64,000 bases of DNA from Anolis carolinensis (Eukaryota): NCBI RefSeq assembly GCF_035594765.1, contig NC_085842.1, forward strand, positions 306,017,749-306,081,748. Direction: 5' to 3'. The notes under the pieces were generated by a model. It was given only the letters and a program-made list of their open reading frames with translations, was not told where the DNA came from and ran no database searches. Each line of letters starts with the position of its first letter. Position 1 is the stretch's first letter. Shown one piece after another: positions 23,385 to 58,427 of this stretch. Both the position numbers and the translations under genes were made by a program.

Positions 23385-24395
23385 TTAAGTATACACCTCT
23401 GTGAGGTCTTTAGAGCCATGCATTATGGGTTGAGGGACCTGTATAATTTTCCAATTATATGTATATGATTGTAACCCTGGATTACAAATCCTGCATTTCA
23501 TGATGTAAAATATAGTCACAATATTCTTAAACAATAATATATTTTTAAGTTTCTAAGGTGCTGTGATTCTCTCTTTTTGTGCATAGGTTTAAAATTCTGT
23601 CCCTCGTTAACAAATAAATTAATACCCCAGATCATTTCAAAATGAATGTCTTCATAGTGAAAACTGGAAAGAGGAATGTCTTGAAGTGGATGCCATTGAA
23701 CAGGACATCTTTTGCTTTATATAAATGTGAAACATTTCATATCATCAGACCAGAACATCGCGTGACAGCAGTCTGTAGCTGAACAACACAGTGGAGTTAC
23801 AGCTTGGTTATTAGGTTTTAACAGCTGGACTTAGAATCTAAGTATAGAATCTAAGTATAGATGGTTAGGCTGTGTTACTTTCTGTCTTTATTTTGTACTC
23901 TAATCATCAGCATCCAGGGCATATTAGTATGTCAGCTTCTTTTCAGAAAATATTGTTCATCAGTCGACATGTACTATAGGTGTTTGTTTAGATACCCAAG
24001 AGAGTAAGTCTGCAGCGTGGAAAAGTAGTTTTGGACTACAGGTCTAAAAATCCCCAGCCAGTAGGGCCAGTTAATTAGGACACACAATTCTTCAGAGCAG
24101 AGGACAACCTTTGACCCTACAAATATTTTTGACGATGGACCCCTAAATCCCTTACCATATATCGTACAACACTTCACAGATGGAAAGTGGAAAATATTGT
24201 GGACTGTATCTCCCATAATCCCTGACCACATACCCATCAGAATTTTCACAGGGAAACTGTGACAAATGTAGCCAAACAACATAGAATATGGTCAAGATGA
24301 CAAAAGTTTTTAATGATGAAGGACACATATGCTTAGACAGGAATCATGCACTGTCTTAACAGGAATCTTGGCAGGAACACAGTGGGAGGAAACGT

Positions 24396-24581
24396 TCACT
24401 CTCTTCTTGAGCTTAATTTAGATTTCATTTCTCTCCTATAAGATGCTATAACATACAACTTCATGTATTTGCTGATCTTGTGGTTGTTTTTCACCAACTC
24501 TGCAAGCAATTCTTGAATCTTCTTGATCGATTCGTTATTTGGTCCTGAAGCAAGTACAATCTCGGTCTTGTCCTGACTGGG
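24396..24581 (-). CDS. Nested family, copy A exon 2 (C-terminally truncated)
   Basis: tttttctcAG acceptor, phase 0. PSQDKTEIV...KSKLSSRRE*. The stop results from a ~17-nt deletion relative to copies B and D; spliced product 171 aa. Confidence 0.7.
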   Translation of the reverse strand, partial: PSQDKTEIVLASGPNNESIKKIQELLAELVKNNHKISKYMKLYVIASYRREMKSKLSSRRE

Positions 24582-25309
24582 CTGAGAAAAATGACAAAAC
24601 AAAATCATTGTTTATTTATTTATTTATTTACAGCATTTATATTCCGCCCTTCTCACCCCAAAGGGGACTCAGGGCGGATCACATTGCACACATAAAGGCA
24701 AACATTCAATGCCATAACATAGAACAGAGACAGAGACAAGACGCAGGCACGGGCTGGCCTCGAACTCATGACCTCTTGGTCCGAGTGATTTGTTGCAGCT
24801 GGCTTGCTTTCCAGCCTGCGCCACAGCCCGGCCTTATCAAACATAACGGGGGGAAACATGCATAGAGGTCTATCAAAATTGCCATTTGGTTTTTACTAGT
24901 TGTAGACTTTACTTTCGAGTCTTGCTCACAGCCTATAGATCATCCCTTTCCCAACTCCTGCTCCCAGCTTCATCCCAAGGTTTCACTTTCTTCTTACTCC
25001 ATTCTCTGAGGTTGCATCTACACTGTAGAATTACTGCAGTTTTACACCAGTTTAATACTGTGGTGCAATCCTATGGGATTCTGGAAGTTGTAGTTTCACA
25101 AGGTTTTTAGAGTTCTAATGTCTCACCTTCTACAACACCCAGGATTGCATAGCATTGAGCCATGAGAGTTAAAGTTGTATCAAATTGATATTTTCACTAA
25201 TTCCTTGGAATCTGTGGCCATGCAAAAACATAATAAAATATGTTGGATCTCTAATTACAAATGCGTAGACCATCTCCTTCAATATATTATTCATACATAC
25301 AAGTCTTAC

Positions 25310-25639
25310 CTTGGTGTTTTTAATGTGTCGCATTAAAAGGCGGAATATTAAAAAAACAATAATTGTAATGAGTAGCTCTGTACCAATAGCAGCCAACTTC
25401 TCTAGGCACCTTTTGGAAAAGACTAGGTCAGAAATACTGTGACATATTTGACAGGCTGAGCTATAAAGACTGTTAGATGGTGTGCCCATCAAAAGTTGCT
25501 CTCCTTCCTTTTCTCTTGTACGAAAAACAACAATTGTGAGAGCTGGTTCCTCACAACTGAAAATATCCTGAAATAAAAAGACTAAAGAGAGGAAGAGGGT
25601 TCCCAAGAGAAGCACATAGAAAGCGCCTGGAAGGGCCAT
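25310..25639 (-). CDS. Nested membrane-protein family, copy A exon 1 (signal peptide and TM helix)
   Basis: ATG in AGCATGG context, 110 codons ending RHIKNTK, GTAAG donor at 25309. Homologous to copies B-E. Confidence 0.78.
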
Positions 25640-25704
25640 GCTGCTGCCTTAAAAACAATTTCTCCCCCAGAAACATTTAGAATAGGAAGCCTTTAATGTA
25701 GGCG

Positions 25705-25800
25705 CATCAGCCAATCAGGCGTGGGGAAATTCTATGAGGTCATAAAGGGGTCTTTATGAGAAATAGTCTATGATGCCATTGATACCTCAAGGGAGGAACT
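25705..25800 (-). promoter_or_regulatory. Conserved upstream block of copy A; homologues at ~43280-43370, 47690-47770, 54430-54520 and 58190-58270
   Basis: AAATTCTATGAGGTCATAAAGG (+ strand) lies 81-96 bp upstream of each ATG (variant CGATGTCA in D). A CCAAT box (CAGCCAAT) is present in A, B and D. Confidence 0.55.
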
Positions 25801-25811
25801 AGGTCAAGGTG

Positions 25812-26676
25812 TGTGATGACTCATGGGCCTTGTAGTCCTGTTCCTAGTACTATTGTGGCAGATGAAGAAGAAAACATGGGATTTTCGCCGGTTCACCCAG
25901 AGCCGGAGTCTCCTCACTTGCAGGATGTTGACATTTGCCCTCAAGAATTCAGCCAAACAGGCCTTGGGCAGAACTCCCCCCCGTTTTCCCGGAGGGACAA
26001 TTATAATAGAGATAGAGGAGCGAGGGAGGCTAATCGCAGGAGCCTGAGAATCGCTGCCAAACAAATGGCTGATTAGGTCTGCTTCCCTTGGGAAATTCTA
26101 AGGAGTCATGCATCTGGACAGAGTTGGGTTTCGTTTCTCGTTCTCTAGGGAAAGAGTTCTGTTGGCGGGAAAACGAGACCCAATATAGGTGTTTGTCGCA
26201 AGGGAAACTTTGCGGAGTCAATTGATCAGCTTGAGGAGAAAGATCGTGTGTGGACTTCGTAATCCCTGTTCCCTGCTTCCTGGATCAAGTTTCAAGTCTA
26301 GCCTTGTCTCATGTTTTGCCACGGACTTTGTTCATGCTTCATGTTTGCCTCATTTCAAGCCTTGGATCAAGTCAAGAATTAAGTTTAATTCCAGCCCTGT
26401 TGTCAAGCTTCATTGGACTTTAAAGACTCTGTTATTTCCCCACACTATTGCTTGGCAAGGTGTGTGTTTCGGTCAAGTGGATTAAAACTTTGAACTCTAA
26501 TATCTTATATTGGACAATACATTTCTGGACTATATTTGACCTCACCTGAAAGGTCTACTTCTGAACTTTATTCTTCACTTGTTTTTATTGATTTTATATA
26601 TTTCTTTAATAAAGATATTAGATAGTTTCTGGCCTCTGTGCAAGGTTATTGGTGCTCTGCAGCCTGGATCCTGACA
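25812..26676 (+). mobile_element. Solo LTR (865 bp)
   Basis: TG...CA ends, perfect 5-bp TSD AGGTG, AATAAA near 26608; empty site in the copy B and D flanks. Confidence 0.85.
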
Positions 26677-27072
26677 AGGTGTAATATGGAAAGACAGCTA
26701 AAACCAGGAATATCCACCTCCTTCTAAGAACACATTTTTACACTTGTCAAGTCAGAAAGGAGACAAGCTTTCATTTCTTTAGTTCCCATTCTATATTGAT
26801 CTAAACAAAAGTACATAAAATAGTATATGCAGTTTGTAAATGGATGACATTACGTTAAAGGGGCCCGGGCTGTGGCGCAGGCTGTTGAGCAACCAGCTGC
26901 AGCCAGTGCAACAAATCACTCTGACCAAAAGGTAATGAGTTCGAGACCAGCTCGGAGCCCCGTGTTTGTCTTTGTTCTATGTTAAGGCATTGAATGTTCG
27001 CCTTATATGTGTAATGTGATCCGCTCTGAGTCCCCTTCGGGGTGAGAAGGGCGGAATATAAATACTGTAAAA

Positions 27073-27107
<35 letters not shown>

Positions 27108-27423
27108 AGTACATAATTGTAGTTCATGTGTAAAAGCAATTTTGGGGGGAAGGCAGTTAGCTGTCATTTTAAAATGTATTTTAATATTTTAGTACGTGCA
27201 TTGTTTTAATTCATATTGTGTCACATTTGTTGGCACGGGCTTTGAGTCCCTACTGAGAAAAAGGTGTGTTAAAATAACAATAACAACAAGAACAATGAAA
27301 TACAGATAGCCTGAGAGATGAGTTTACACTAGGGCTTCCAGTACAGGAACATCCTTGATATTCCTAGACCAAAACAGGGGACAGACCCAGTGATATCGTA
27401 AAGTGTGATGCATTTACAGAATA

Positions 27424-27746
27424 CAGTAGAGTCTCACTTATCCAACATAAACGGGCCAGCAGAACGTTGGATAAGTGAATATGTTGGATAATAAGGAGAG
27501 ATTAAGGAAAAGCCTATTAAACATCAAATTAGGTTATGATTTTACAAATTAAGCACCAAAACATCATGTTATACAACAAATTTGACAGAAAAAGTAGTTC
27601 AATAAGCAGTAATGTTATGTTGTAATTACTGTATTTACAAAATTAGCACCAAAATATCACGATATATTGAAAACATTGACTACAAAAATGCGTTGGCTAA
27701 TCCAGAACGTTGGATAAGTGAGTGTTGGATAAGTGAGACTCTACTG
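27424..27746. mobile_element. Tc1/mariner-type MITE, same family
   Basis: Same TIRs and TA flanks; absent at the paralogous site near 43815. Confidence 0.9.
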
Positions 27747-30700
27747 TACATATTTCTCTTTAGGAGGTTATGACAGAAACCATAAAGGGGCCATTCTTAG
27801 TTCAGGGTGAAATGAATAGATTATTCTTCCTCACCCCCATAGGGAGATGGAATAAGGAAGATTTAATCTAGACTACTTGCTTGGGTGGAGATCACCAAGA
27901 AATACCAGAAGCCATAGGTTATATTTCTAGGCTTGACACCTCTAAATATTCCTTACAGAGGCCACAGCAGTTTGCTTTACCTCAATCTGTCAAGAAGGAC
28001 AAGATTCCACATATGTTTTTTCTACCCTCTTCCATCTATGTTTGCCTCATATGTTAGTAAAGTAAATATTACACAGTGCTTGCAATGCTTTTCACTCTAA
28101 GGAGACTATTTGCACTAGAAAAGTGGTTCCCAAGCTTTGGTCCTCCAGTTGTTTGGGACTTCAACTCCCAGAAGCCCTAGCCAGCTTAGTCAACGGTCAG
28201 GAATTCTAGGAGTTGAAGTCCAAAAATCTGGAGGACCAAAGGTTTGGGATCACTGCACTAGAACTATTTGATTTGAAACATCTCTGATAAGAATTCTGCT
28301 CCAATTGTACACAGAGGTTGCTATGTTTGGGGGGGGGGGGCAGTGTTGCTTACAAAATAAGTTTTTGGGGTGGGTGGGATGATATCATGGGAGATGTGGT
28401 TACAAAAATGTAGCTATGTGACTTGGCAACTCTGTATTTAATATTGTGAAAGAAATGTTTCTATAGCTTTCCAAGGTTTCTACCATGGATAAATTGTTTA
28501 AAACACTATCAATAATGCTATCAATAAAACTATGAATATTTGGTTGCTGTGTAAGTATGGCAATATGTTGACTCTGGATTTTTGTGTATAAATGGGTTTT
28601 CTATTTTTTAGGTAGGGTTCAACATAAATGAATAAATAAATAGATACGTGCTCATGCAAATCAGGCTTCACCTCGCCCTAGAAGCCCAGATGAGTAAATC
28701 GAGGCTGTCATCCTTTGGCCATAGCTTAATAAATGATTCACTAGAAAGGTCAATCCTGGTTGGAAAAGTGGAGGGTAGTAAGAAAAGAGATAGGATAACG
28801 CTGAATCAAGAAAAACATGGCTCTATGTGGGCAAGAGCTGACAAGGTGACACAAAGGTCTCTCATTCTTCTGGTCACCATACATTGACATTGATTTGAAG
28901 GCAGCAACAAGGGTTCAACACCTTGGCTACTTCATTTAAATTTCACATTCAAATCTAAAGGGGAATCACTGCCACATCAACATAGAAACCATCAACCATC
29001 ACTGAACAAGATGAAGGAAAAGCTAGTATATTCTGAATAAATTAAAACATGGGGACATCGTCACACCACACAAAAGGGACACAGACAGACAATAATATTA
29101 GATAGGGACTGACTGATGAATAAGGAAACAGTTGGATGCTATAGTCCCAAAGTTTGTTGTTTGTTATCAGTTGCCATTAAGTCCACTTTGACTTATAGCA
29201 ACCCTGTGCACAGGAGACATCCAAGTAACTCTTTCATCAATAACACTGCTCAGGTTTTGTAGATTTATTGTAATGGCTCTCTTGATAGAATCTATCTGTA
29301 TTGTGGTCACAATCACAAGCATTATTGTCTAATCAGTCATCTTCTCACAATATGTCCCAGGGTATGCTAGTCTCAATTTAGTCATCTTGACTTCAAGAGA
29401 GAGTTAAGGCTTGATTTGCTCTTGAACTCATTCATTTGTCTTTTTGGCAAACTATGATGTCCATAGTGCTTTTGTGCATTTCAAGTGAGTACATGCAAAG
29501 TGCAGAAGAATTTCTTCATTCAGATTTGTTGACATATAACTCTCATCCCATTATCCCCCAGTAAGCATAACCATGAAGATGACATATCTGATTGGGCAGC
29601 AGGATATCAGGAATCACATTGTTCATACATAAAGCTCAGCAGCTTTCTTGCCTCTCATTTTTAAAATGTTTGCAATGCCCTTCCACTCAGATAAGTGATT
29701 ACACTACTGTATTATTAATATACCTTCCCCATTTTAGCAGTCAATTTAATCCAATGGTAATATAAGCAAAATTCTAGGCCATATGACACTATGGGACAAG
29801 GATTAAAACCAAAATCATCTCACTGCATTTTTACTTATTTCATATATCTCCGAAAGTCATATTTATGCTGCTTTGTGATTCTGCTAACAAAGGTCCCCTA
29901 AAGTGGTTTACGTAATCAAGCCAGACAAAGCTTCATCAGATAGCAATAAATTAAAACTAAGCCATTCATGTTCAAAGGAGGAGAGTTAAACCTTCAATCC
30001 TTTATTTTAAAAATATTAAAAGACAAACAGAAAAAACATGCATTTTACCACCACCACCACGCTCCCCAACATCATCAGGGAAAAAGTTCCTCTTGCCTCC
30101 TTTGGGAGGGAGTTTTATAAGTGGGAATTCTATGGATGCACATTGCAAAGTCAAGCTTTTCTCAAGGAAACTTGGGAACTAGAGTTCTTTGAGAGCCAGT
30201 CTGTAGAGGCAGCATGGTGATGTGACTCGAATGTTAGACTACAGCTCTGTGAGATTAGGATTTGAACCCCTGCTTGGTCAAGGAAACCCACTGTGTGTCA
30301 TTGGGGATGTCACATTCTTTCCTCCTCAGATGAAGGCAAAGGCAAATCTGTATCCTATACAAATCTTGCCAAGAAAACTCTACATTGATGGTATCGTGAC
30401 TTTAGAATTTGACATAACTTGGAAATGACTTGAAGGCACACAACAACAACAAAACAACAACAACAGATTATAAGAACGCTCTGTGTGCATGGGATTATGA
30501 TTCCACAAATCCTTTGAGGAGCTGCTGGGCACAGGCCCAATCTGATCCACAAGCCGATTGCTCTTGTCTCTCCCTTTCCCAAATTATTTATCTCCAATCT
30601 CTGCAGGTCTCCTGAGAAGTTATTTCTCTAAGCAGCATCACGCAAATCTCATGAGAATTTCTCCGCCTGGGTTTTGATAATTTAAGTTGATGACCACCCT

Positions 30701-36008: not shown

Positions 36009-37764
36009 AGAATCATAGAATCATAGAATAGTAGAGTTGGAAGAGACCACATGGGCCATCCAGTCCAACCCCCTGCTAAGAAGCAGGAAATCGCATTCAA
36101 AGCACCCCCGACAGATGGCCATCCAGCCTCTGCTTAAAAGCCTCCAAAGAAGGAGCCTCCACCACGGCCCCGGGGAGAGAGTTCCACTGTCGAACAGCTC
36201 TCACAGTGAGGAAGTTCTTCCTGATGTTCAGGTGGAATCTCCTTTCCTGTAGTTTGAAGCCATTGTTCCGTGTCCTAGTCTGCAGGGCAGCAGAAAACAA
36301 GCTTGCTCCCTCCTCCCTATGACTTCCCTTCACATATTTGTACATGGCTATCATGTCTCCTCTCAGCCTTCTCTTCTGCAGGCTAAACATGCCCAGCTCT
36401 TTAAGCCGCTCCTCATAGGGCTTGTTCTCCAGACCCTTAATCATTTTAGTCGCCCTCCTCTGGACGCTTTCCAGCTTGTCAGCATCTCCCTTCAACTGTG
36501 GTGCCCAAAATTGGACACAGTATTCCAGGTGTGGTCTGACCAAGGCAGAATAGAGGGGGAGCATGACTTCCCTGGATCTAGACGCTATTCCCCTATTGAT
36601 GCAGGCCAGAATCCCATTGGCTTTTTTAGCAGCCGCATCACATTGTTGGCTCATGTTTAACTTGTTGTCCACAAGGACTCCAAGGTCTTTTTCGCACACA
36701 CTGCTGTCAAGCCAGGCGTCCCCCATTCTGTATCTTTGATTTCCATTTTTTCTGCCGAAGTGAAGTATCTTGCATTTGTCCCTGTTGAACTTCATTTTGT
36801 TAGTTTTGGCCCATCTCTCTAGTCTGTCAAGATCGTTTTGAATTCTGCTCCTGTCTTCTGGAGTGTTAGCTATCCCTCCCAGTTTTGTGTCGTCTGCAAA
36901 CTTGATGATCGTGCCTTCTAACCCTTCGTCTAAGTCGTTAATAAAGATGTTGAACAGAACTGGGCCCAGGACAGAACCCTGCGGCATTCCACTTGTCACT
37001 TCTTTCCATGATGAAGGCGACGCATTGGTGAGCACCCTTTGGGTTCGTTCGCTTAGCCAATTACAGATCCACCTAACCGTAGTTTTGTCTAGCCCACATT
37101 TTACTAGTTTGTTTGCCAGAAGGTCGTGGGGGACTTTGTCGAAGGCCTTACTGAAATCCAGGTACGCTACATCCACAGCATTCCCTGTATCGACCCAACT
37201 TGTAACTCTATCGAAAAAAGAGATCAGATTAGTCTGGCATGACTTGTTTTTGGTAAATCCGTGTTGACTATTAGCAATGACCGCATTTGTTTCTAAGTGT
37301 TCGCAGACCACTTCCTTAATGATCTTTTCCAGAATTTTGCCTGGTATTGATGTGAGGCTGACCGGACGGTAATTGTTTGGGTCGTTCTTTTTTCCCTTCT
37401 TGAAGATAGGGACCACATTCGCCCTCCTCCAATCTGCTGGGACTTCTCCCGTTCTCCAAGAACTCTCGAAGATAATTGCCAGTGGTTCTGAAATAACTTC
37501 CGCTAGTTCCTTCAGTAGTCTTGGATGTAGCTGATCTGGCCCTGGGGACTTGAATTCGTTTAGAGTGGCCAGGTGTTCCTGGACAACTTGTTTCCCTATT
37601 TGGGGTTGGATTTCCCCCAATCCTTCGTCCATTCCATGTTGCTGAGGTTGAAGGTGGCTTTCTTTTTGTGAGAAGACCGAGGCAAAGAAGGCATTAAGTA
37701 GTTCTGCCTTTTCCCTGTCCCCTGTCGCCATCACCCCATCTTCTCCTTGCAATGGCCCTATCGT
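36009..37764 (-). mobile_element. CR1 LINE, 5'-truncated, with uninterrupted ORF2 reverse-transcriptase region
   Basis: 557-aa frame with [29 protein letters not shown] and FADD motifs; (ATTCTATG)n 3' tail; CAACAT flanks both ends. Confidence 0.97.
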
Positions 37765-39576
37765 CAACATTCTTCATAGAGACAATGCTGAAATAATCCA
37801 TGGAAGATAGTTTGGCGTATATGTCAAGCCTGCAGAAATCACCAGGTCCCACCTGATCTTGGAAGCTAAGCATGGTTAGTACTGGGATGGGAAGCCTCCA
37901 ATGAATACCAAACACTGTATGCTATTTTTCAGGGAACAATCTGACAACACCACCTATAAAATAAATGGATTGCCACAGGTCAACAAGTGACTTGAAGGCA
38001 CACACAAAGAAAGAAAGGAAAGCTTATATGAGATACACTTGTGTTCACATCCCCACAGTACTATGAAACTTTCTGAGCCTAAACCACTTATCACAATTAA
38101 GAGTAAAATGGAATGACCTCCAATACATTGCTTTAGGTTTCTTATAAGGATAGAATATGTATATAATGATTTAACTGTGTTTTACAATTTGGTCTAAAGC
38201 AATGCAATACACTTTTGGTTAAAATGATGTCTATTTTAAAAAAATTAATAGCTTTCAGAAGATATCTCCAGGATTTACTGTGCAAGAGGCCCTGGGTTTT
38301 GGTGCAAGACTTAAACCTCCAGGGGTATTTGGGGCAGTCTTATATGACAAAACATGTCCTTAATGAACCTTAATCCTATTAATGGGATTGTCAGGGCAGA
38401 TTTGTCATTGAAAAGATGTTTTCATCCATGAGACTTATAGCTTGTTCATAAGTGAAACTACTCCATTGGTATGGAAAGGGAATAGAATGGTAAATATCAC
38501 TCCGTATGAGATTTGAAATATGCAGTGGCTGTCTTTGCTACATGTTTATATGGTTGTTTTGTAGGAAAATGCACATCTATCCAAAGCTAGTCCACAAGAA
38601 TTTGTGGCTTCATCACTCCCTAGGACCCCTGCTTAGACATTGCAAACATTATTGAACCCATAAAGTTGTATTATTTTCACTCAGAAACATAACCTTTGTC
38701 TTGCTTTTTATTTGGAAACACTGAACTGAAAAGGTAGGATGCTACTCTCCAGAAGCATCCTCCGTCTAGTTTCATCCAAACTTTTAACAATTGTCTTTGT
38801 TACATTATTTGCCAAGGATGTATTTTAAAATATTTTCAATATTATCAGTATTGTTACGTTTAATATATTGCAGGCCTGTAGGCCCATCTTCATGTCCATC
38901 AATGATGGGCAGGCATAGCTGCCAAGGCCTTTTCTTCTCCTGAAGGAAGTAACATACAGCCCAATCCTTATTTATATTCCAATTAAATTAATCTTTAAAA
39001 AGTTGTGATTCCACGTTTTGGTAAAGGGATGGTGCTACATTATTACACCGTTGCTCTCTTTAGTTTTGTTCTTGTACATTTTCTTTTGTATTGGCTGGGA
39101 TTGCTTTTCTTGAGTGAACTGAGAGGCCTTTACCATTGAAGGTAGCATATACTGTATATTTCTCAGACAAATAAAGGGTTATGCAAACAACTGAAAGGAA
39201 GCAGATGCTAAAGCCAAATATTTTCAACAGGGGATGTGTGTTACTCTGTTCTTAGGGCAAGACACCTTTGCACCTCAAATCATAAAGTGGAAGAACCGAA
39301 CCTGACTTTTTTGCCAATTGTGTGGCTGCAATTGGCTGTCTTTTCTTTTCTTGAATATATGCATGTAATTAGCTGCTTTGGGAAGGCTTGGGCATGAAAA
39401 CTCTGGAGGTGAGATGAGAAAGAGTTTAACTCTCTTTCACTTACGTCCACAATCCTGTTCATAGGACAAGACTGATGTTGGTTCTTTATTCCCAATTCCT
39501 TATTTGCACAAATCAAAACCACAATCTTCAAGGCCTCCACTAGTTGAGTTTTGTTGGAGGAAGTTGTTCATAGCTA

Positions 39577-41912: not shown

Positions 41913-42138
41913 CTTAGGGAGATGGGACCAAGAACATAACCTAGTCTACTTGCTTGGATGGAAAACCACCAATGAATACTGGAAGATGTAGGCTACCAAG
42001 CACAATCTTTAATTTTCATCTCAATGCATACTGAGCTCCACATTGGGGCTTTGGTCACTTGTGGTGTCATTGACAGAACTGCTTGTAACATGAAAGATGT
42101 TGGAACATGGTAAGAGGGAAGCTTTCTGGGCTTGAGGT

Positions 42139-42393
42139 TCATGCACTGTCTTGACCAGAATCATGGCAGGAACACACTGGGAGGAACCATTCACTCTCCG
42201 TTTCATAGTTCTTTCTTCTTCTCCTTAATTTAGATTCCGTTTCTTTCCTGTAATGTCCCATAACATACAGCTTCATGGTTTTTTTGATATTGTGGGTGTT
42301 TTTCACCAATTGTTCAAGCATTTCTTGATTTTTCTGGGTCGAGTCGTTATTCGGATCTGATGCAATTACTATCTTGTTCATGTCCTGACTGGG
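42139..42393 (-). CDS. Nested family, copy B exon 2
   Basis: tttttttcAG acceptor. PSQDMNKIV...FLPVCSCHDSGQDSA*; spliced product 194 aa. ATTAAA on the - strand at 42008-42013. Confidence 0.8.
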   Translation of the reverse strand, partial: PSQDMNKIVIASDPNNDSTQKNQEMLEQLVKNTHNIKKTMKLYVMGHYRKETESKLRRRRKNYETESEWFLPVCSCHDSGQDSA

Positions 42394-42880
42394 CTGAAAA
42401 AAATGACAAAACAATATGATTGTTATCAAACATAAGGGGAAAAATATACATAGAGGTTTATCAAAATCGCCATTGTGTTTTTACTAGTTGTAGACTTTCT
42501 TTGGAGTCTTGCTCACAGCCTATACATTATCCCTTTCCAAACTCCTGCCCCATCTTCATCCCAGTTTCAATTTCTAATGAGGTTTCATCTACACTGTAGA
42601 ATTACTGCAGTTTTACACCAGTTTAATACTGTGGCGCAATCCTATGGGATTCTGGAAGTTGTAGTTTTACAAGGTTTTTAGAATGCTAATGTCTCACCTT
42701 CTACAACACCCAGGATTGCATAGCATTGAGCCATGAGAGTTAAAGTCATATCAAATTAATATTTTCACTAATTCCTTGGAATCTGTGGCCATGCAAAAAC
42801 ATAATAAAATATGTTGGATCTCTAATTACAAATGCGTAGACCATCTCCTTCAATATATTATTCATACATACAAGTCTTAC

Positions 42881-43210
42881 CTTGGTGTTTTTAATGTGTC
42901 GCATTAAAAGGCGGAATATTAAAAAAACAATAATTGTAACGAGTAGCTCTGTACCAATAGCATCCAACTTCTCTAGGCACCTTTTGGAAAATACTAGGTC
43001 AAAAATACTGTGACATATTTGACAGGCTGAGCCATAAAGACTGTTAGATGGTGCTCCCATTGAAAGTTGCTCTGCTTCCCGTTCTGTTGTATCGAAAGCA
43101 GCATTTGTGGAGGCTGATTCCTCACCACTGAAAGCATCCTGTAAAAAGAAGACTGAAGAGAGGAAGATGGTTCCCAAGAGAAGCACATAGGAAGAGCCTG
43201 GAAGAGTCAT
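42881..43210 (-). CDS. Nested family, copy B exon 1
   Basis: ATG at 43210 (MTLPGSSYVLLLG...), 110 codons ending RHIKNTK, GTAAG donor at 42880. Confidence 0.8.
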
Positions 43211-43881
43211 GCTGCTGCTCCAGGAATAATTTCTCCCCCAGAACAAATTATGATAAGAGGCCTTTAAAATAGGTGCATCAGCCAATCAGGTGTGGGGAAA
43301 TTCTATGAGGTCATAAAGGGGTCTTTATTAGAAATAGTTTATGATGCCATTGATATCTCAAGGGAGCAGCCAAGGTTTAAGTATGGAGAGATATCTAAAA
43401 CCAGGAAGATCTACCTCCCTCTAAAAACACATTTTTACACTTGTCAAGTGAAGGATGACAAGCTTTCATTTCTGTAGTTCCTTTTCCATAGTGAACTAAG
43501 CAAAAGAACATAAAAGAGTATATGCAGTTTGTAAATAGATGACATTAGATTAAGAAGTCTATAATTGTAGTTCATTTGTAAATGTAGTTTTGGGAGAATG
43601 CAATTGGTTGTCATTTTAAAATGTATTTTAATATTTTAGTAGAGTTCCATTGTTTTAATTTGCTGCTACAACAACAACAACAACAGCAGCAAAAGAATAC
43701 ACATAGCCCGAGAGACTGGTTTACACTAGGGTTTCCAGTACAGGAACATCCTTGATATTCCTAGACCAAAACGTGGGACAGACCCAGTGATGTAATAAAG
43801 TGTTATGTACACACAGAACACATATTCCTTTTTAGGAATTATGACAGAAACCATAAATGGGCTCTTCTCAGATCAGAGTGA

Positions 43882-44872
43882 TGTTGCACCCCTAGGCTGC
43901 AGAGACACCTCAAAACCACATTGGAGCCCCAGAATATAGGCAAAACAAGCGGTTTATTGAAGATTATATACAAGCAGTAGCAAATTAATTCAAAGTCAAT
44001 GCAATAAGGTTTTAGTCCACAAGGTACAAGTTTCTTGAGAATGTTGAAGCTAGAGTCTCTAAAAGTCACTTAGGGAAACAGAGTTCAAACAGGATATCAA
44101 AATGAATCCAAATAAGTTATCAAAATTAGTCCAAAGCACAGGATCAAACTAGAATGCAGGGAATCAAACACCAAAAGTAATCCCAATGCTAGAACACAAG
44201 GCAGGATCTTAACTGGAGCAGGAAATCCAAACTGCAAACTTACTCGAACAAGAACTAGATAAGCTAAGATCTTCAATAGTGAGGACAAGGACTGGAACAA
44301 GGCACAGAGCATAAAACTGCATGAATTGGCATGGAAGTTCACAGGAACATGGGACAGGATTCTTGAAGCATGAAACTGAGATTTCTCTTCCTCGATGAGC
44401 AAAGTTGTCACCTCTGAATCTCTCAGAGAAAGCAGTCCTTCTTAAGGGTAAGCTCAAGGCCTCTTCCCATGAGAAAACTGCTCATTATTCTTTTTCAATA
44501 ACAATTGCTTACTGCGCCTGAAAGTATCCCTTTCCCTCTGTTGCTGATTTATCGCTTTCTTTCTGTCATTAATCTTATCACTTCCAGAATCCAAACTAGA
44601 ATGCCCATCTCGCAAAAGAAGGTCCAATCTTGACTCCTTCAAAGAACGCAGTTCAAGCCGCCTGCTTGAAACCATTATGTTCTCTGGTCCCAGAATCCAC
44701 CGGGACAGACTCTGGCTGGCTTGGAACAGCAGTCTCATCTGGCTGCATAGGAACAGGAATCTCAGGCCCAAACCCAGAATCTCCTGACAGGCCAGGTGCA
44801 GGGACAATCACAGGTTGAACAGGTCCCACTGCAGGTTCACCTGACAGCTCAGATGGAGGCTGGGCTATAACA
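43882..44872 (-). mobile_element. Solo LTR-like insertion (~990 bp)
   Basis: TGTT...AACA ends with a degenerate 5-bp TSD; absent at the paralogous site near 27805. Confidence 0.75.
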
Positions 44873-45498
44873 GGTGCAATGAATAGATTATTCTTCCTCA
44901 TCCCCATAGGGAGATGGAATAAGGAACATTTAAGCTAGACTACTTGCTTGCATAGAAGATCATCAACAAATACCAGAAGCCATAGGTTACATTTCAAGGC
45001 TTGCCCCCTCTAAATATTCCTTGCCTAGGAAAAACCTCTGAAATGCATGGAATCACCATGAGTTGATATGCGAGTTGAAGGCACATGAATAAACTACTTC
45101 TAGGCAAAATGACGCAGAAAATGAGACCATAGTGACTCATCAACTGGGAGTGAAAGAGGAAGCTAGGTAAATTATTGGCATTATTAGTAGTAGTATTGTA
45201 TATCCTACTTCTGGAATCTAGTTAGAACAGGCATGGGTAAACTTCGGTCCTCCCGGTGTTTTGGACTTAACGCCCACAATTCCTGACAGTCTCAGGCCCC
45301 TTCCTTTTTCCCCTCATCTGCCCATGCCTGAGTTAGAAGGACGGATGTACAGCTAATAAAACATCATATTGTTGCATTTGAAAACGAAGTCCAATAGTTT
45401 CACTTCACTGGCACCCATGGGGATTGGTAGATGCTGAACACATGTAGTTTCTGGTTGCTTGAGATTTCCTATTTAAAATAGGCCTATTATTATACCTA

Positions 45499-45800
45499 GG
45501 AGCCCCGGTGGTGAAGTGTGTTAAAGCACTGAGCTGTTGAACTTGCAGACCTAAAGGTCCCAGGTTCAAATCCCGGGAGCGGTGTGAGCGCTTGCTGTTA
45601 ACTCCAGCTTCTGCCAACCTAGCAGTTCGAAAACATGCCAATAGGTACCGCTCCGGTGGGAAGGTAAGGGCGCTCCGTGCAGTCATGCCGGCCACATGAC
45701 CTTGGAGGTGTCTACGGACAACGCCGGCTCTTCGGCTTAGAAATGGAGATGAGCACCAACCCCCAGACTGGACTTAACATCAAGGGAAAACCTTTACCTA
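45499..45800 (+). mobile_element. Sauria-type SINE
   Basis: Full head, core and ACCTTTACC tail. Confidence 0.88.
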
Positions 45801-46236
45801 ATATTATAACTTATTCTATATCATACCATCAACTGTGTATTGATTTGATATAAATATTGGAATGCAGTAATAGAAAACAAAGATAAACTTTATTAAGGTA
45901 ATACAGTGTAACTATTTTTCTGTATTATTAAAAACAGCTTAAAAAATTAAATATTTCTTCATTTTTTTCCAGTTGCTTGAACATTCTGGTTGCTTGGATT
46001 CTAGTTAACTGAGAGTCTACTATATTAACAGTTTAGTATAAGTGACATGGCCTAGGATAACAGGTTCATATGAAAAGCTACAGCATAGTTTTCCAAGTAT
46101 AATCTTTAATATTAATATCAACATGTGTTAAGTTTTGCGTTGAGGCTTGACTTGTCGTTTGCATTGTCATTTACAGAACTGCTTGTAACACGAAGGATTG
46201 GCGCTTGGGAAGAGGGAGGCTTTCCAGTCTAGAGGT

Positions 46237-46488
46237 TCATTCACTCTCTTGACCGGAATCAGAGCAGTAACACATTGGGAGTGAAGCCTCGCTCTCGGTT
46301 TTATAAATCTTTCTAATTGCTCTTAATTTAGATTTCTGTTCTTTCTTCTTAAGGCGTATGGCATACTTCATGTATTTATTGATCATATAGGTGTTTTTCA
46401 CCAACTGTTCAAGGATTTCTTTATTGTTCTGGGTCAATTCATATTTCACTTCTGCAGGAGCTGGTGTTTCAGTCATGGCCTGACTGAG
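46237..46488 (-). CDS. Nested family, copy C exon 2
   Basis: tttttctcAG acceptor. LSQAMTETP...LPMCYCSDSGQESE*; spliced product 190 aa. ATTAAA on the - strand at 46105-46110. Confidence 0.8.
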   Translation of the reverse strand, partial: LSQAMTETPAPAEVKYELTQNNKEILEQLVKNTYMINKYMKYAIRLKKKEQKSKLRAIRKIYKTESEASLPMCYCSDSGQESE

Positions 46489-46813
46489 CTGAGAAAAACA
46501 ACAAAACAAGACCATTGTATCAACTTAAGGATAAATAAATAAATAAATAAATAAATAGAGGTTTATCAAAATTGCAATTTCTCTCTATCTTTGTGTCTCT
46601 TAATAGAAGCTTGATGTGTAGATAGTAAGTATAGAAAGCACAGACTAAAGTGACATTTTCTCAAAGTGTCAGTCTGGTGTTAAATACAGGGAGGAGACCT
46701 GTAAAAAGTGCTGCAACGCTTTTTAAGGTTCTTCTTGCAGCCTTAGAGAACAATGTAAATACATTTTCATTAGAAATATGCAAATAAAATAAAATATGTG
46801 CGACACTCTAATG

Positions 46814-46902
46814 CAGGGGTCCCCAAACTTTTTAAGCAAGGGGCCAGTTCATGATCCTTCGGACCATTGGAAGGCCGGACTATAGTTGGCCACTGAGCAA
46901 TA

Positions 46903-46944
<42 letters not shown>

Positions 46945-47057
46945 GAGGGTTGGAAGAGATCCCTTGGGCCATTTAGTCTAACCCCCTTCTGCCTCTGTGC
47001 ACCAAAAGCACAAGCAAAGCATCCCTGACAGATGGCCACCCAGCCTCAATATTAATA

Positions 47058-47112
<55 letters not shown>

Positions 47113-47240
47113 GTTGTAAGAGAAGAAGAGACCCCTTGGGTCATTTAGCCCAACCCCCTTCTGCCCTTGTGCCGTGGGGGCTAGATAAATGGCTTCGATG
47201 GGCCGCATCCGGCCCCCGGGCTTTAGTTTGGGGACCACTG
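46814..47240. mobile_element. hAT-type element carrying (TAA)n tracts, in the copy C intron
   Basis: TIR CAGGGGTCCCCAAACT...AGTTTGGGGACCACTG; perfect 8-bp TSD CTCTAATG. Confidence 0.9.
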
Positions 47241-47294
47241 CTCTAATGTGTGGGCCATACCCTTCATTGTATAATGTATACATATAAATCTTAC

Positions 47295-47615
47295 CTTAAC
47301 ATTTTTCATGTGTTTCAGCAAAATGCATAGTATAGATAAACCAATAACTGTAATGAGTAGCACTGCACTGCTAACATACAACATCTGTAGGCTCCTTTTG
47401 GTAATTTCTAAGAAAAAAATACTGCGGAATATTTGGCAGACTGAGCCATAAAGACCATCAGATGTCTCTCTCTTCAAATATTGCTCTGTTTCCTGTGCCA
47501 TTGCTGACAAATCAAAGCCAATCATTGCCCAGGCAGGTTTTTCATCACTGAGGACGTTCTGCAGGAAGACTGCAGTTCCCAAGAGCAGCATATAAGAACG
47601 GCCTCCAAGAATCAT
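47295..47615 (-). CDS. Nested family, copy C exon 1 (divergent subfamily)
   Basis: ATG at 47615 (MILGGRSYMLLLG...), 107 codons ending KHMKNVK, GTAAG donor at 47294. Confidence 0.8.
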
Positions 47616-47850
47616 CCCTACTGTGTGTTGGTCAACCAGAAGTAATTGTGTTAGAGATTCTTCAATATGGGAACATCTTCAGCCATGGAAAAATTCTATG
47701 AGGTCATAAAGGTCTCCTGATCTTTATTAGAAGTAGTCCAGGATGTCACTAATACCTTAAGGGAGCAACCCAAGATAGATAAAATTCTTAAACATATTTA
47801 CATATTGCTGCTCGTAAATGACAAACAGTTTGGGAAAGTATGTTGATATC

Positions 47851-49643: not shown

Positions 49644-49858
49644 GTTGTTTAAGGCTTTCATAGCTGGAATCACAGGGTTGATGTGTGTTTCTCGGGCTGT
49701 ATGGCCATGTTCCAGAAGTATTCTCTCCTGACATTTCATCCACATCTATGGCAGGTACTTCACAATCTCTGAGGATGCCTGCCATAGATGTGGGCGAAAC
49801 AAGAGATAATACTTCTGGAACATGGCCATACAGCTTGGAAAACACACAACAACCCTCC
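49644..49858. mobile_element. Penelope-like palindromic fragment
   Basis: TSD AATCTTTCAAAAGT; empty site near 38990. Confidence 0.75.
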
Positions 49859-53258: not shown

Positions 53259-53513
53259 TCATGCACTGTCTTGACAGGAATCATGGCAGGAACACACTGG
53301 GAGAAAATGGTCACTCTCCGTTTCATAGTTCTTTCTTCTTCTGCTTATTCTACATTTCATTTCTTTCCTGTAATGTCCTATAACATACAACTTCATGTAT
53401 TTGTTGATTTTGTGGGTGTTTTTCACCAGCTGTTCAAGCATTTCTCGATTGTTCTGGGTCAATTCGTTATTAGGTCCTGAAGCAGGTACTATCTTGGTCA
53501 TGCCCTGATTGGC
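53259..53513 (-). CDS. Nested family, copy D exon 2
   Basis: ttttttcAG acceptor. ANQGMTKIV...FLPVCSCHDSCQDSA*; spliced product 187 aa. ATTAAA on the - strand at 53128-53133. Confidence 0.8.
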   Translation of the reverse strand, partial: ANQGMTKIVPASGPNNELTQNNREMLEQLVKNTHKINKYMKLYVIGHYRKEMKCRISRRRKNYETESDHFLPVCSCHDSCQDSA

Positions 53514-54051
53514 CTGAAAAAACTGACAAAACAAGATCATTGTTATCAAACATAAGGGGGAAAACATGCATAGAGGTTTATCAAAATCGCCATTGTGTTT
53601 TTACTAGTTGTAGACTTTACTTTGGAGTCCTGCTCATAGCCTATATATCGTCCATTTTCCAACTCCTGCCCCCAGTTTGTTTTCTTATGTCTCCGTTCTA
53701 TGAGGTTGCAACTAAACTGTAGAATTACTGCAGTTTTACACCATTTTACCTGCTATGGTTCAATGCTATACGGAGGACAGCAGGAGAAGGAGCCCAAGCC
53801 ACCCTTCGATGCCAGCCTCCTCCAGAGTTGTAATTTCACAAGGTATTTAGAGTTGGGATGTCTCACCTTTCTACAGAACCCAGGATTCCATAGCATTGAG
53901 CCATGAGAGCTAAAGTAGTGTCAAATTCATATTTTCACTAATTCCTTGGAATCCTTGGCCATGCAAAAACATAATAAAATATGTAGGAAGCTCTAATTAC
54001 AAATGTGTAGCCCATCCCCTTCAATATATAATTCATACATACAAATCTTAC

Positions 54052-54360
54052 CTTGATGGTTTTAATGTGTCTCAGCAAAAGGCAGAGTATAACCAAACCA
54101 ATAATTGTAACGAGTAGCACTTTACCACTAGCATACAAGTTCTCTAGGCCAAAAATACTATGGAATATTTGACCAACTGAGCCATAAAGACTGTTAGATG
54201 GTGCTCCCATTGAAAGTTGATCTCCTTCCTGTTTCTTTGTATCGAAAGCAACATTTGCCCAGGTTGGTTTCTCACAATAGACAGCATCCTGATGCAAGAA
54301 GACTGAAGAGAAGATGGCTCCCAAGAGAAGCACATAATAGGAAGGGCCTGAAAGGACCAT
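54052..54360 (-). CDS. Nested family, copy D exon 1
   Basis: ATG at 54360 (MVLSGPSYYVLLLG...), 103 codons ending RHIKTIK, GTAAG donor at 54051. Indels relative to copy B keep the frame. Confidence 0.8.
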
Positions 54361-55339
54361 GATGCTGGCCCAGAAATGATTTCTCCCCCAGAAATGATTA
54401 GGATAGGAAGCCTTTAATACAGGTGCATCAGCCAATAAGGTGTGGAGAAATTCTACGATGTCATAAAGGAGTCTTTATAAGAAATAATCTGTAATGCTAT
54501 TGATGCCTCAAGGGAGCAACCAGACCAAGGTTTAAGTATGGAGAGATAGCTAAAACCAGGAATATCTATCTTTATACACTTGTCAAGTGAGAAGGGAGAC
54601 AAGCTTTCATTTCTTTAGTTCCCATTCCTTACTGAACTAAGCAAAAGAACATTAAAGAGTATATGCAGTTTGTAAATAGATGACATTAGATTTAAAAGTA
54701 TGTAATTGTAGTTTTGCAGTTTTGCGGAGAATGCAATAGGTTGTGATTTTAAAATGTGTTTTGATATTTTAGTACAATTGCATTGTTTTAATTTATATCA
54801 TGTCACATTTGCCATCCCACCCTTGCAATAAGAGACCAGATAATTTTGTGGATTGAAATATGGCCAACATTTATTTAAACTGTTATCTGAATTAACTTTT
54901 TTGACTTGCAAAATATAACTTAAGGGGCATGAACCTGGTATGTTTTTAAGCCGAGTTAGTGGCCTTCCCTGACCTACCCTTCAGCTAAACTGGGTGAAAG
55001 ACTTGAATCCCCGGATGTAGTCAAGTTTAGTGTCTCCAGGTTGACCACTCAGGAAAATATACGAAGACTTCTGTCCCAAGTCAAAAGGATTTTACGGAGC
55101 CAGAACTCTCCCCATTTTAAAGGCCATTTCCGTTCCGTTGGCTGTTTTCTGTCACAGATTAGGGGTACACGCCACTTTACCCCTATATCCCACCAGACTA
55201 ATAAATGGCCTTAATGCCCCTTTGCAAGTCCCCTAGGAACTGGTGATTGCCTGCATCCGAGAGATGGATACTGTGAAGTCTTGGCCCTGCCTTTTCCTCT
55301 CCTTTGCTTTAGTTCCCTATGTTTAGGTTTTCCCAATAG

Positions 55340-55620
55340 TGCTGCAAATCATTTGCAAAGACACTGAGTTTATCTTTCAAAAAGTGTGTCTATACACAGA
55401 TAACATGATAGTCTTAGGCTGTCTCAAAAACTCCATCAAAAGATTCAAAATATATGTAGCAAATAGAATATACAAGATCCTGTCTTGTTCCCAGCCATAT
55501 CACTGGATCCACATTGCCACAGAAGAGAATCCTGCAGATATTGCTTCCAGAGGTCTATCTGCCCAGAAGTTGCATCATTCCAGCTGACTGTCAAGTCCCA
55601 AGTGCCTTGCAGATCAAATC
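55340..55620 (+). mobile_element. BEL/Pao LTR-retrotransposon pol (RNase H) fragment
   Basis: YTDNMIVLG...RFKIYVANRI...WIHIATEENPADIASRG is the typical BEL/Pao RNase H signature. Confidence 0.85.
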
Positions 55621-55735
55621 CTAGCTCATACCAAGGACTCGCTGCATTTGTCATATGCAAAAATGTATTTTGAAGACTAAAGGCCGATGAGTTTTAAGGT
55701 GTTTCTTCTTTTGTTGCTCTAAAACTATTATTTAA

Positions 55736-55958
55736 TTATTTTCCTCTCCTTTTTTCCCTCCTCCCCTCCCCTTTTTCTTTCTTGCCTTTCCCCTTTCTCC
55801 CTCTCTCCCTTCTTCTTGACCAGGAATCATGGCAGGAACACACTGGGAGGAAACGGTCACTCTCCCTTTCATAGTTCTTTCTTCTTCTGCTTAATTTAGA
55901 TTTCATTTCTTTCTTGTAATGTCCTATAACATACAACTTCATATTTTTGTTGATCTTG
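55736..55958 (-). pseudogene. Nested family relic F: 3' half of exon 2 only
   Basis: MKLYVIGHYKKEMKSKLSRRRKNYERESDRFLPVCSCHDS is B/D-like. No acceptor, exon 1 or promoter is present, and it is fused to upstream-flank sequence. Confidence 0.8.
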
Positions 55959-56316
55959 GCTCTGCATTTTTGTATGCAGATGACATTAGATTAAAAAGTA
56001 CATAATTGTAGTTCATTTGTAAATGCAGTTTTGGGAGGAAGGCAATTAGCTGTCACTTTATAATGTATTTTTTTAATAATTTACTACAGTACAATTGCAT
56101 TGCTTTAATTTATATTGAGTCCCATTCGCCATCCCACCCTTGCAATAAGAGACCAGACAACAGTGTAGATTGAAACATGGACAATTTTTATTTAAAACAT
56201 GTGAATTAACTTTACACCTCCCCTTTTCCCTACTCCCTCCCCCTCCCCCCACTCAAACTCCCCCAACCTCCCCTCCCCCTCCCCACCCCCTCACCCTTTT
56301 TACCCTTCACTTACTC

Positions 56317-56628
56317 TCACACCCCTCTTCTCTTTTTCCCTCCTCCCCTCCCCTTTTTCTTTCTTGCCTTTCCCCTTTCTCCCTCTCTCCCTTCTTCTTG
56401 ACCAGAACTGGGGGAGAAACACACTTGGATTGAATCCTCGCTCTCATAGATCTTTCTTATTATTAATTGAGTTTGCAGTATTTTCCTTTCAACACGAAGG
56501 ATGTCCTTCATACATGTGTTCATTTCACTGGTGCTTTTCAGCAACTCTTCCAGTATGTTTGTACGGTGCTTTCTCCATTCATGTTCCGCTTCTAAAGCGC
56601 CTTGTCTCTCTCTCGTGTCCTGACTGGC
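56317..56628 (-). CDS. Nested family, copy E exon 2 with a basic Gly/Arg/Lys tail
   Basis: tttttcccAG acceptor. Open frame ASQDTRERQGALEAEHEWRKHRTNILEELLKSTSEMN...SSGQEEGREGERGKARKKKGRGGGKKRRGV*; spliced product 199 aa. AATAAA on the - strand at 56187-56192. Confidence 0.72.
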   Translation of the reverse strand, partial: ASQDTRERQGALEAEHEWRKHRTNILEELLKSTSEMNTCMKDILRVERKILQTQLIIRKIYESEDSIQVCFSPSSGQEEGREGERGKARKKKGRGGGKKRRGV

Positions 56629-56924
56629 CTGGGAAAAATGACAAACAAGATCATTGTATTAACGTAAGGAAAAAATAAATAAATAGAGGTTTATCACAAT
56701 GACCATTTTGTTTTACTCTCCCTATCTTTGTGCCTCTTAACAGAAGCTTGATGTGTAGATAGTAAGCATAGAAAGCACAGACTAAAGTGACATTTTCTCA
56801 AAGTGTCAGTCTGGCGTTAAATACAGGGAGGAGACCGGTAAAAAGTGCTGTAACCTTTGTGGAAGGTTCTTCTTGCAGGTGTAGAGAACAATACAAATAC
56901 ATTTTCATTAGAAATATGCAAATA

Positions 56925-57525
56925 CAGTAGAGTCTCACTTATCCAACATAAAAAGGCCGGCAGAATGTTGGATAAGCGAATATGTTGGATGTTTGTTTTT
57001 CGTGTCAGGAGCAACCGGAGTTGCTTCTGGAGTGAGACTTGGCCGTCTGCAAGGACGTTGCCCAGGGGACGCCCGGATGTTTTGATGTTTTACCATCCTT
57101 GTGGGAGGCTTCTCTCATGTCCCCGCATGGAGCTGGAGCTGATAGAGGGAGCTCATCTACACTCTCCCCGGGTGGGATTCGAACCTGGCAGCTTTCAGGT
57201 CAGCAACCCAACCTTCAAGTCACGAGGCTTTTATCCCCTAGGCCACCGGAGGCTCCTAATATGTTGGATAATAAGGAGGGATTAAGGAAAAAGCCTATTA
57301 AACATCAAATTAGGTACGATTTTACAAATTAAGAACCAAAACATCATGTTATACAACAAATTTGACAGAAAAAGTAGTTCAATACGCAGTAATGCTATGT
57401 AGTAATTACTGTATTTACGAATTTAGCACCAAAATATCACGATGTATTGAAAACATTGACAAAAAATTGCGTTGGATAATCCAGAACGTTGGATAAGCGA
57501 GTGTTGGATAAGTGAGACTCTACTG
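56925..57525. mobile_element. Tc1/mariner-type MITE with a nested SINE (56991-57257, - strand)
   Basis: TIRs and TA flanks; the inner SINE is flanked by the 12-bp duplication AATATGTTGGAT. Confidence 0.9.
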
Positions 57526-57588
57526 TAAAATAAAATGTGTGAGACACTCAAATGGGTGGACCATACTGTTCATTGTATAATGCATATA

Positions 57589-57818
57589 CAGTAGAGTCTC
57601 ACTAATCCAAGCTAAACGGGCCGGCAGAAGCTTGGATAAGCGAATATCTTGGATTATAAGGACTGATCAAGGAAAAGCCTATTAAACATCAAATTAGGTT
57701 ATGATTTTACAAATTAAGCACCAAAATATCACGATATATTGGAAACATTGACTACAAAAATGGCTTGGATTATCCAGAGGCTTGGACAAGCGAGGCTTGG
57801 ATTAGTGAGACTCTACTG
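57589..57818. mobile_element. Tc1/mariner-type MITE, internally deleted, in the copy E intron
   Basis: TIRs and TA flanks; ends about 13 nt from the copy E splice donor. Confidence 0.88.
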
Positions 57819-57832
57819 TATATAAATCTTAC

Positions 57833-58120
57833 CTTAATGTTTTTCTTGTGTTTCTGTGAAATGTAAATGATTGCTGTGTCAATCACTATGATAAGTATTA
57901 ATGCACCATAAATATACATCTCTGTGGTCATTTCTGTCAAATCTAAACCAAAAATGCTGGTGAAGACATTGGAAGGATCCCTCTCCGAAAGTTGCTCTTG
58001 TTCCTGTGGTGGCAAATCAAAGGCTGTTGTTGCCCAGGATGGTGTTTCGTAACTGAGAACAGTCTGTAGGAAGACTACAGTTCCCAAGAGAAGCATATAA
58101 GAACAGCCTCCAAAAGTCAT
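57833..58120 (-). CDS. Nested family, copy E exon 1 (most divergent)
   Basis: ATG at 58120 (MTFGGCSYMLLLG...), 96 codons ending KHKKNIK, GTAAG donor at 57832. Confidence 0.75.
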
Positions 58121-58427
58121 CCTTACTGTATGGTAGTCAACCAGAAATACTTCCGTTAGAGAAGCGTCAATATGAGAACATCAGGCCTGGAGAAATTCTA
58201 TGAGGTCATAAAGGTCTGCTGATCTTTATAAGAAGTCAATGATGTCACGAATACATCAAGGCAGCAGCCCAAGAGAGAGATGGGGGTGGGGAGAGAACAT
58301 ATCTTGCACATATTTACATATTGCTACTCATAAATGACAATCAGTTTGGGAAAGTATGTTGATATCTTACAAATCATGTTTTTTAAAAAAAGGCTTTCAT
58401 GAGATACTGTGTGTTGTGCTTCTATAG

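Follow-up and report, generated by a model that had tools for sequence, protein, structure and literature searches.

A probable lineage-specific TEX50 expansion nested antisense in a complexin intron of Anolis carolinensis

The 64,000-nucleotide stretch of Anolis carolinensis contig NC_085842.1 analysed here (CM069368.1; assembly GCF_035594765.1, positions 306,017,749 to 306,081,748; hereafter the window) contains, on the minus strand and inside an intron of a complexin gene, an array of five homologous two-exon units, named A to E. These units are very probably lineage-specific paralogs of TEX50, multiplied to at least seven copies and relocated with their two-exon structure kept. The anole copies are not a new kind of gene: the TEX50 family is already known, and what is new here is a branch of it that has changed its site, gained copies and evolved fast. 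A preliminary description, made from the DNA letters, had presented the array as a family that could not be recognised as any named gene; this view gives way to the match with a described family, TEX50, which is the kind of match that the description itself had named as counting against it.

Among 1.84 billion representative proteins, five match a profile built from the exon-2 pieces of the five units: the anole models LOC107982358, LOC134295872 (unit C) and LOC134296777 (E-like), an unnamed Logan protein of 78 residues (P0005), and a turtle TEX50, the 'testis-expressed protein 50 isoform X2' of Mauremys mutica (E 1.6e-4). The search with exon 1 of unit B returned two NCBI anole models, LOC134296785 and LOC107982358, the latter (193 residues) being a sixth paralog located outside the window, and a wider profile search added LOC107983323 (unit D) and TEX50-like proteins of crocodile, platypus and echidna. 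The only named proteins obtained by sequence or profile searches were TEX50 or TEX50-like. BLASTP alignments of B and C with the TEX50 of Varanus (P0015) are full-length, with 29-34% identity and E values of 6e-14 (B) and 9e-19 (C), and turtle TEX50 proteins likewise align with both over their whole length. When the alignment of the anole proteins was compared by hhalign, profile to profile, with that of eleven TEX50 proteins of other species (Varanus, turtles, crocodile, monotremes), the probability was 99.6% and the E value 1.2e-23 over 179 columns. Pfam searches with the ten exon pieces and the full-length NCBI models showed sub-threshold noise only; as the TEX50 proteins of Varanus, turtle and platypus have no Pfam match either, TEX50 being without a Pfam model, this blank result is uninformative. 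A literature search for the LOC identifiers of the anole copies found no mention of them, and an exact-sequence look-up of a turtle isoform (P0006) matched no contig. A genomic Logan contig of SRR31946008 (L006, 1456 nucleotides) also contains two TEX50-like exons, the first represented by its end only, with an intron of about 890 nucleotides between them; the second encodes P0005, which the exon-2 profile scores (E 1e-5) better than the turtle protein.

The exons of the five units and the elements that belong to them are the following.

25310-25639, minus strand: unit A exon 1, an open frame whose 3' half is near-identical to B
24396-24581, minus strand: unit A exon 2, shortened by a premature stop codon at 24396-24398 (seen in the DNA alignment to B and D)
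24347-24409, minus strand: relic of the original C-terminal coding sequence of unit A, out of frame (tblastn match to residues 173-193 of LOC107982358; DNA alignment)
42881-43210, minus strand: unit B exon 1, with signal-like N-terminus, ectodomain, putative transmembrane segment and basic stop-transfer (residues 1-110 of LOC134296785)
42139-42393, minus strand: unit B exon 2, with predicted cytoplasmic helix, K/R cluster and LPVC (residues 111-194 of LOC134296785)
43269-43369, minus strand: conserved block upstream of unit B, with a TATAAAG-like box, TGACCTCA at 43306-43313 and an ATTGG box (seven-way alignment)
47616-47681, minus strand: unit C 5' untranslated region, as far as an RNA contig extends (run X6, record 31, 47295-47681)
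47295-47615, minus strand: unit C exon 1, open frame, equal to NCBI LOC134295872 (P0003) and within a spliced RNA contig
46237-46488, minus strand: unit C exon 2, open frame, in the same spliced RNA contig
45960-46236, minus strand: unit C 3' untranslated region, as far as the RNA contig extends (run X6, record 31, 45960-46488)
54052-54360, minus strand: unit D exon 1, open frame (residues 1-103 of LOC107983323, P0016)
53259-53522, minus strand: unit D exon 2, starting at 53522 with the NCBI acceptor and at 53513 with that of the preliminary description
57833-58120, minus strand: unit E exon 1, open frame, absent from the genes called by NCBI
56317-56628, minus strand: unit E exon 2, open frame, with a Gly/Lys/Arg-rich tail after SGQEEG
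55823-55957, minus strand: orphan exon-2 fragment without exon 1, 84% identical to residues 35-79 of D exon 2

Translation and alignment of the ten exons, all with open frames, bear out the five homologous minus-strand units with canonical splice sites that had been described, and also the lengths given for exon 1, which shows 110, 110, 107, 103 and 96 codons in A to E. Exon 2 contains 61, 84, 83, 84 and 103 codons plus the stop, and the introns measure 728, 487, 806, 538 and 1204 nucleotides, respectively. All five units show the donor AAG/GTAAGA and a pyrimidine-rich CAG acceptor, and the identity of the other four units to B is 42-78% in exon 1 and 31-73% in exon 2. As to the spliced lengths proposed earlier (171, 194, 190, 187 and 199 residues), the predicted B is exactly the spliced NCBI model LOC134296785 (194 residues), the 171 residues of A result from a deletion of 17 nucleotides, and D has 190 residues in NCBI. 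Unit D contains two in-frame CAG acceptors nine nucleotides apart (53514-53522), and the upstream one, used by NCBI, adds FFQ (190 versus 187 residues). For B (LOC134296785, P0001), C (LOC134295872) and D (LOC107983323) there are already NCBI models, named 'uncharacterized protein'. The NCBI record of the region (L005) calls no gene at the site of E and no protein for A turned up in the protein search, and both units appear to be unannotated. A and E were analysed exon by exon and their statistics were pooled from separate exon alignments; the full-length B, C and D are database proteins. No further full copy was found in the window by tblastn with all the exon pieces and, later, with the relatives from outside it; the orphan exon-2 fragment was absent from the earlier list.

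The gene structure and the protein layout of the units are shared with TEX50. Varanus, Mauremys, platypus and all the anole copies show two coding exons separated by a phase-0 intron placed after the Lys codon (AAG/GT) that closes the basic stretch following the transmembrane segment, at residue 103-110, or 125 in LOC134296777, whose model is extended at the N-terminus, and the coding sequence of mouse Tex50 is also contained in exons 1 and 2 (PMC12435281). The predicted layout is type I-like, as had been proposed, with an N-terminal hydrophobic segment, one transmembrane helix and a long cytoplasmic helix: the hydropathy profiles of the anole proteins show an N-terminal peak at 2-28 and a transmembrane peak at about 73-108, as in turtle and platypus TEX50, and an AlphaFold model, of low confidence overall (mean predicted local distance difference test score 52.9) and used for helix positions only, places helices at 6-27, 59-108 and, better supported, 124-179. 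Mouse TEX50 has a signal peptide of 23 residues and a transmembrane segment at 78-100 (PMC12435281). Anole proteins resemble TEX50 (mouse Q9D5B7; Varanus komodoensis; turtle P0007) in their size of 190-200 residues, in the predicted signal peptide, short ectodomain, single transmembrane segment and helical basic tail of about 85 residues, and in the motifs PAW..V.(W/F)D, EQL, Q(I/L)..., CLE..Y, ML..LV.NT...KY(L/M)K, RKE..KL..(K/R)RK and (F/L)P.C. The last of these, at the C-terminus, is LPVC or LPMC in B, C and D and has been lost by frameshift in A. Nesting antisense within an intron of another gene is a further likeness, whereas the anole genes differ from TEX50 in number (at least seven copies against one), in their sequence, which lies at the end of a long stem, in the host, presumably complexin-4 and not ANKRD45 next to PRDX6, and in the extra tails of the E-type copies. 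The small single-pass membrane proteins of spermatids FAM209, TEX46 and TMCO2 are similar to the anole units in size and general layout, and no sequence relation to them was detected in the Pfam, sequence and profile searches.

In a maximum-likelihood tree, where A and E were entered as exon-1 pieces only, the seven anole copies form one clade (100/100) which is sister to Varanus TEX50 (99/97), with turtles, crocodile and monotremes outside; the expansion is thus specific to the lineage, as had been claimed. The clade was divided in two subclades: one contains A, B, D and LOC107982358, and the other contains C with E and LOC134296777, E being the closest relative of LOC134296777. Both copies from outside the window are on the same chromosome, LOC107982358 at about 300.31 Mb (5.7 Mb away) and LOC134296777 at about 305.00 Mb (1.06 Mb away). 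Mouse Tex50 is inside Ankrd45, with Prdx6 adjoining (PMC13264541); Varanus TEX50 (L004) is antisense inside an ankyrin-repeat gene, beside a peroxiredoxin of 224 residues, and turtle TEX50 (Mauremys, L007) is also antisense inside an ankyrin-repeat gene. Since the gene is nested in ANKRD45, or an ankyrin-repeat host, in mouse, Varanus and turtle, the complexin-intron site of the anole is derived. No ankyrin-repeat exons were found near LOC107982358 or LOC134296777, where tblastx with the Varanus and turtle loci matched only TEX50 and one repeat-like block, and the ANKRD45/PRDX6 locus of the anole was not located. Judged from their host, the anole copies are relocated paralogs or co-orthologs and not positional orthologs of TEX50, whose small size and own promoter may make it tolerant of intronic sites.

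Some further features were seen at the dispersed loci. At LOC134296777 (L003 9893-10078 and 10001-10108) the NCBI model (244 residues) places the start codon 36 codons upstream of the Met to which the other copies align, and the extension resembles the transmembrane segment; just upstream of this gene there is a partial exon-1-like duplicate (48% identical to residues 65-122), and the annotated N-terminus is probably an artefact of it. Directly upstream of LOC107982358 there is a C/E-type exon-1 fragment (L001 9269-9591, at 300.3 Mb), which indicates that remnants of tandem duplicates occur at the dispersed loci as well. The Varanus TEX50 locus (L004 15094-15679), the LOC107982358 locus (L001 12145-12722) and the window (19757-19903) have in common a block of 41-47% translated identity, which is probably repetitive DNA of one family and no marker of synteny.

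Contigs of public sequencing runs were mapped to positions 42000-47800, which contain units B and C. Run X6 comprises 65 M letters, far too few for single-copy lizard genomic DNA. In unit C, an X6 contig of 916 nucleotides joins 45960-46488 to 47295-47681 and skips exactly the predicted intron, which reads CT..AC on the plus strand and GT..AG on the minus. In unit B, the X6 contigs 42193-42395, 42881-43056 and 43027-43288 are exon-only and continue at their loose ends into the first bases of the exon across the intron; X6 shows one intron contig, about 200-fold shallower. Units B and C are therefore transcribed from the minus strand and spliced just as the preliminary description had predicted. 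Three other runs of the same study contain 42-47% of the sampled words of B, while runs X1, X3 and X10 show low-depth contigs across the exon-intron borders, DNA-like or unspliced and uninformative on expression. Four runs show very high contig depth, up to about 10^6, in bins 45492-45879, 46850-47237, 42582-42775 and 43746-43939; these are high-copy repeats, two of them inside the introns of B and C and the others in flanks, in agreement with the distribution of repeats described before.

About 130 nucleotides before the ATG are conserved in A to E and LOC107982358; LOC134296777 is unaligned in this block because its annotated ATG is further upstream. Read in gene sense, the block contains a TATAAAG-like box and TGACCTCA, with an ATTGG box in the A/B/D type. 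In A, B, C and E the element TGACCTCA stands 81-96 nucleotides upstream of the ATG, and in D it is present as a variant. In both B and C the RNA contig stops 18 nucleotides beyond this element, consistent with a transcription start just downstream. Each copy appears to have its own short promoter, antisense to the host, with a TATA-like box and TGACCTCA, which resembles a cAMP response element and may drive expression in spermatids.

Ratios of nonsynonymous to synonymous substitution (dN/dS) were obtained from pooled Nei-Gojobori counts on separate exon alignments, with bootstrap intervals. Across the anole pairs they range from 0.6 to 1.2, in keeping with the rapid evolution that had been claimed. 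The pairs C/E, C/LOC134296777 and E/LOC134296777 show 0.60-0.62 with upper bootstrap bounds below 1 (E/LOC134296777, 0.62, interval 0.42-0.96), and the ratio against Varanus is 0.5. Values above 1 in the young clade are not significant and no positive selection is claimed. Between B and D, the divergence p is 0.14-0.16 in exons and 0.13 in flanks, and the length of the indels is a multiple of three in 3/3 exonic cases versus 2/15 non-coding ones. Under neutral simulation, a frame stays open with a probability of 0.15-0.28 if the lineage is young, and of 0.006 at most if it is old. The in-frame exon indels together with this simulation indicate that frame integrity is selected while amino acids change fast; the frames of B to E are intact and weakly constrained.

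Unit A is a frameshifted, decaying copy, and of the five intact genes described before only B to E hold. Its exon 2 has lost 17 nucleotides between 24404 and 24403, and the resulting frameshift leads to the stop at 24396-24398 and to a product without the conserved C-terminal motif, the old C-terminus being readable out of frame at 24347-24409. Its homology to B and D begins about 120 nucleotides before the ATG and stops just after exon 2. A conversion tract links A with B, which are 97% identical over B 42621-43045 and 82% beside it. In the orphan fragment below E, an A/B/D-type exon-2 half is fused to an E-type tail; the same arrangement is present below LOC134296777 (L003), which indicates that the block was duplicated whole. 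Tandem and dispersed duplication, conversion, dN/dS near 1 and the birth and death of copies (A, orphan fragment) are also the evolutionary mode of tandemly expanded, fast-evolving male reproductive gene families; the likeness is in this mode only and involves no sequence relation.

These data also bear on whether the array consists mostly of decaying TEX50 duplicates, of which one or two work and the rest are young, still-transcribed pseudogenes without disabling mutations yet. The state of A, frameshifted and with its homology truncated on both sides, the presence of the orphan fragment, the dN/dS of about 1 among A, B, D and LOC107982358, the exons of B and D, no better conserved than their flanks, and the missing NCBI gene at E and protein for A would all suit general decay. 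However, B to E keep frames, start codons and splice sites intact, the exon indels between B and D do not follow the non-coding pattern, and with the rates of the simulation (substitutions about 0.03, indels about 0.009) the chance that both B and D stay open is about 3e-4; moreover, dN/dS is 0.6 in the older pairs, whose intervals stay below 1, and both copies examined for expression (B and C) give spliced transcripts. A mostly decaying array is improbable.

It is very improbable that the units form an undescribed membrane-protein family unrelated to any named gene, as they were first read, although neither the exons nor the full-length models match Pfam and NCBI names the models as uncharacterized: TEX50 itself is equally blank in Pfam, and pairwise, profile and profile-profile comparisons, intron position and tree all place the units in TEX50. 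Equally improbable is that they are the cargo or coding parts of a transposable element spread within the intron. Copies are dispersed over 5.7 Mb, and repeats and a reverse-transcriptase open frame are present between units; nevertheless, the introns are retained, so that the copies are not retrocopies, the reverse-transcriptase frame belongs to an insertion of its own between A and B, the homologs of other amniotes are a single-copy gene with conserved synteny, and the duplication units show different ends, as expected of segmental duplication.

Several points weigh against identifying the units with TEX50 and its function. The synteny of TEX50 (ANKRD45, PRDX6) is not kept in the anole, where the host is a Synaphin gene. 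The anole proteins are only about 30% identical to TEX50 of other species and stand on a long stem branch (1.07 changes per site), and function may therefore have shifted. The E-type copies carry IQVC, without the Pro, in place of the otherwise invariant FP.C/LP.C. In the young clade of A, B, D and LOC107982358, dN/dS is 0.9-1.2 with intervals that span 1, and amino-acid constraint on these copies is thus not demonstrated. Expression in the anole testis is something that we infer from homology only, and SPEM3, the partner of mouse TEX50, is described as conserved among mammals, so that the known partner may not exist in lizards.

The host gene shows three coding exons and one insertion in the gap between units A and B, as follows.

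12608-12778, plus strand: host complexin coding exon 1 (Pfam Synaphin, E 5e-13, profile positions 1-49)
20749-20835, plus strand: host complexin coding exon 2, bounds approximate (Synaphin, E 2e-10, profile positions 50-78)
63436-63666, plus strand: host complexin last coding exon, 5' bound approximate (Synaphin, E 4e-11, profile positions 79-142)
36097-37770, minus strand: open frame of 557 residues (Pfam RVT_1, E 2e-35), from a retroelement inserted in the 16.5 kb that separate A from B

The host is a complexin, with the Synaphin profile tiled by three plus-strand exons and a C-terminal CAAX box, CSVM, followed by the stop, which terminates the last exon. In that exon the Synaphin match covers 63436-63663 and the end of the NCBI gene maps to 63666 of the window. 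The gene called by NCBI across the array encodes a Synaphin protein of 160 residues on the strand opposite to the five units, which are thereby placed, as the preliminary description had it, antisense in coding intron 2, about 42.6 kb long. The host is presumably complexin-4 and not complexin-3; its function has no evident link to the nested TEX50-like copies.

In the mouse, TEX50 is a small, testis-specific type I protein that spans the membrane once and belongs to late spermatids. It first forms a ring about the acrosome and later is located in the posterior ring of the sperm head; it interacts with SPEM3, and acrosome and head-tail integrity, like male fertility, depend on it (PMC12435281, PMC13711846); the posterior-ring location and the interaction with SPEM3 are known from mouse only (PMC13711846). 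By analogy, the anole copies would be membrane proteins made in spermatids, entering the membrane by means of the N-terminal signal and the transmembrane helix, and their long basic cytoplasmic helix might connect the membrane with the perinuclear cytoskeleton, a role that has been suggested for the mouse protein. The multiplication of copies and their fast change would be the usual dynamics of male reproductive genes. Tentatively, it is possible that an ancestral TEX50 left ANKRD45 and that its at least seven copies diversify under sexual selection, in a sperm-head arms race with conversion and copy birth and death, the canonical copy having perhaps been lost; if this were true, copy-specific variants may shape sperm-head architecture or sperm competition in lizards.

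As regards annotation, five genes now listed as uncharacterized LOC entries can be named TEX50-like, and two unannotated copies, E intact and A frameshifted, are to be added. TEX50 was shown to be essential for mouse male fertility, and a component of the posterior ring, only in 2025-2026. A TEX50 that has been relocated in a squamate, with at least seven copies and a near-neutral rate of amino-acid change, is a natural experiment on which parts of the protein matter, and the parts that persist across the anole copies are the transmembrane helix, the ML..LV.NT..KY.K helix and the basic cluster.

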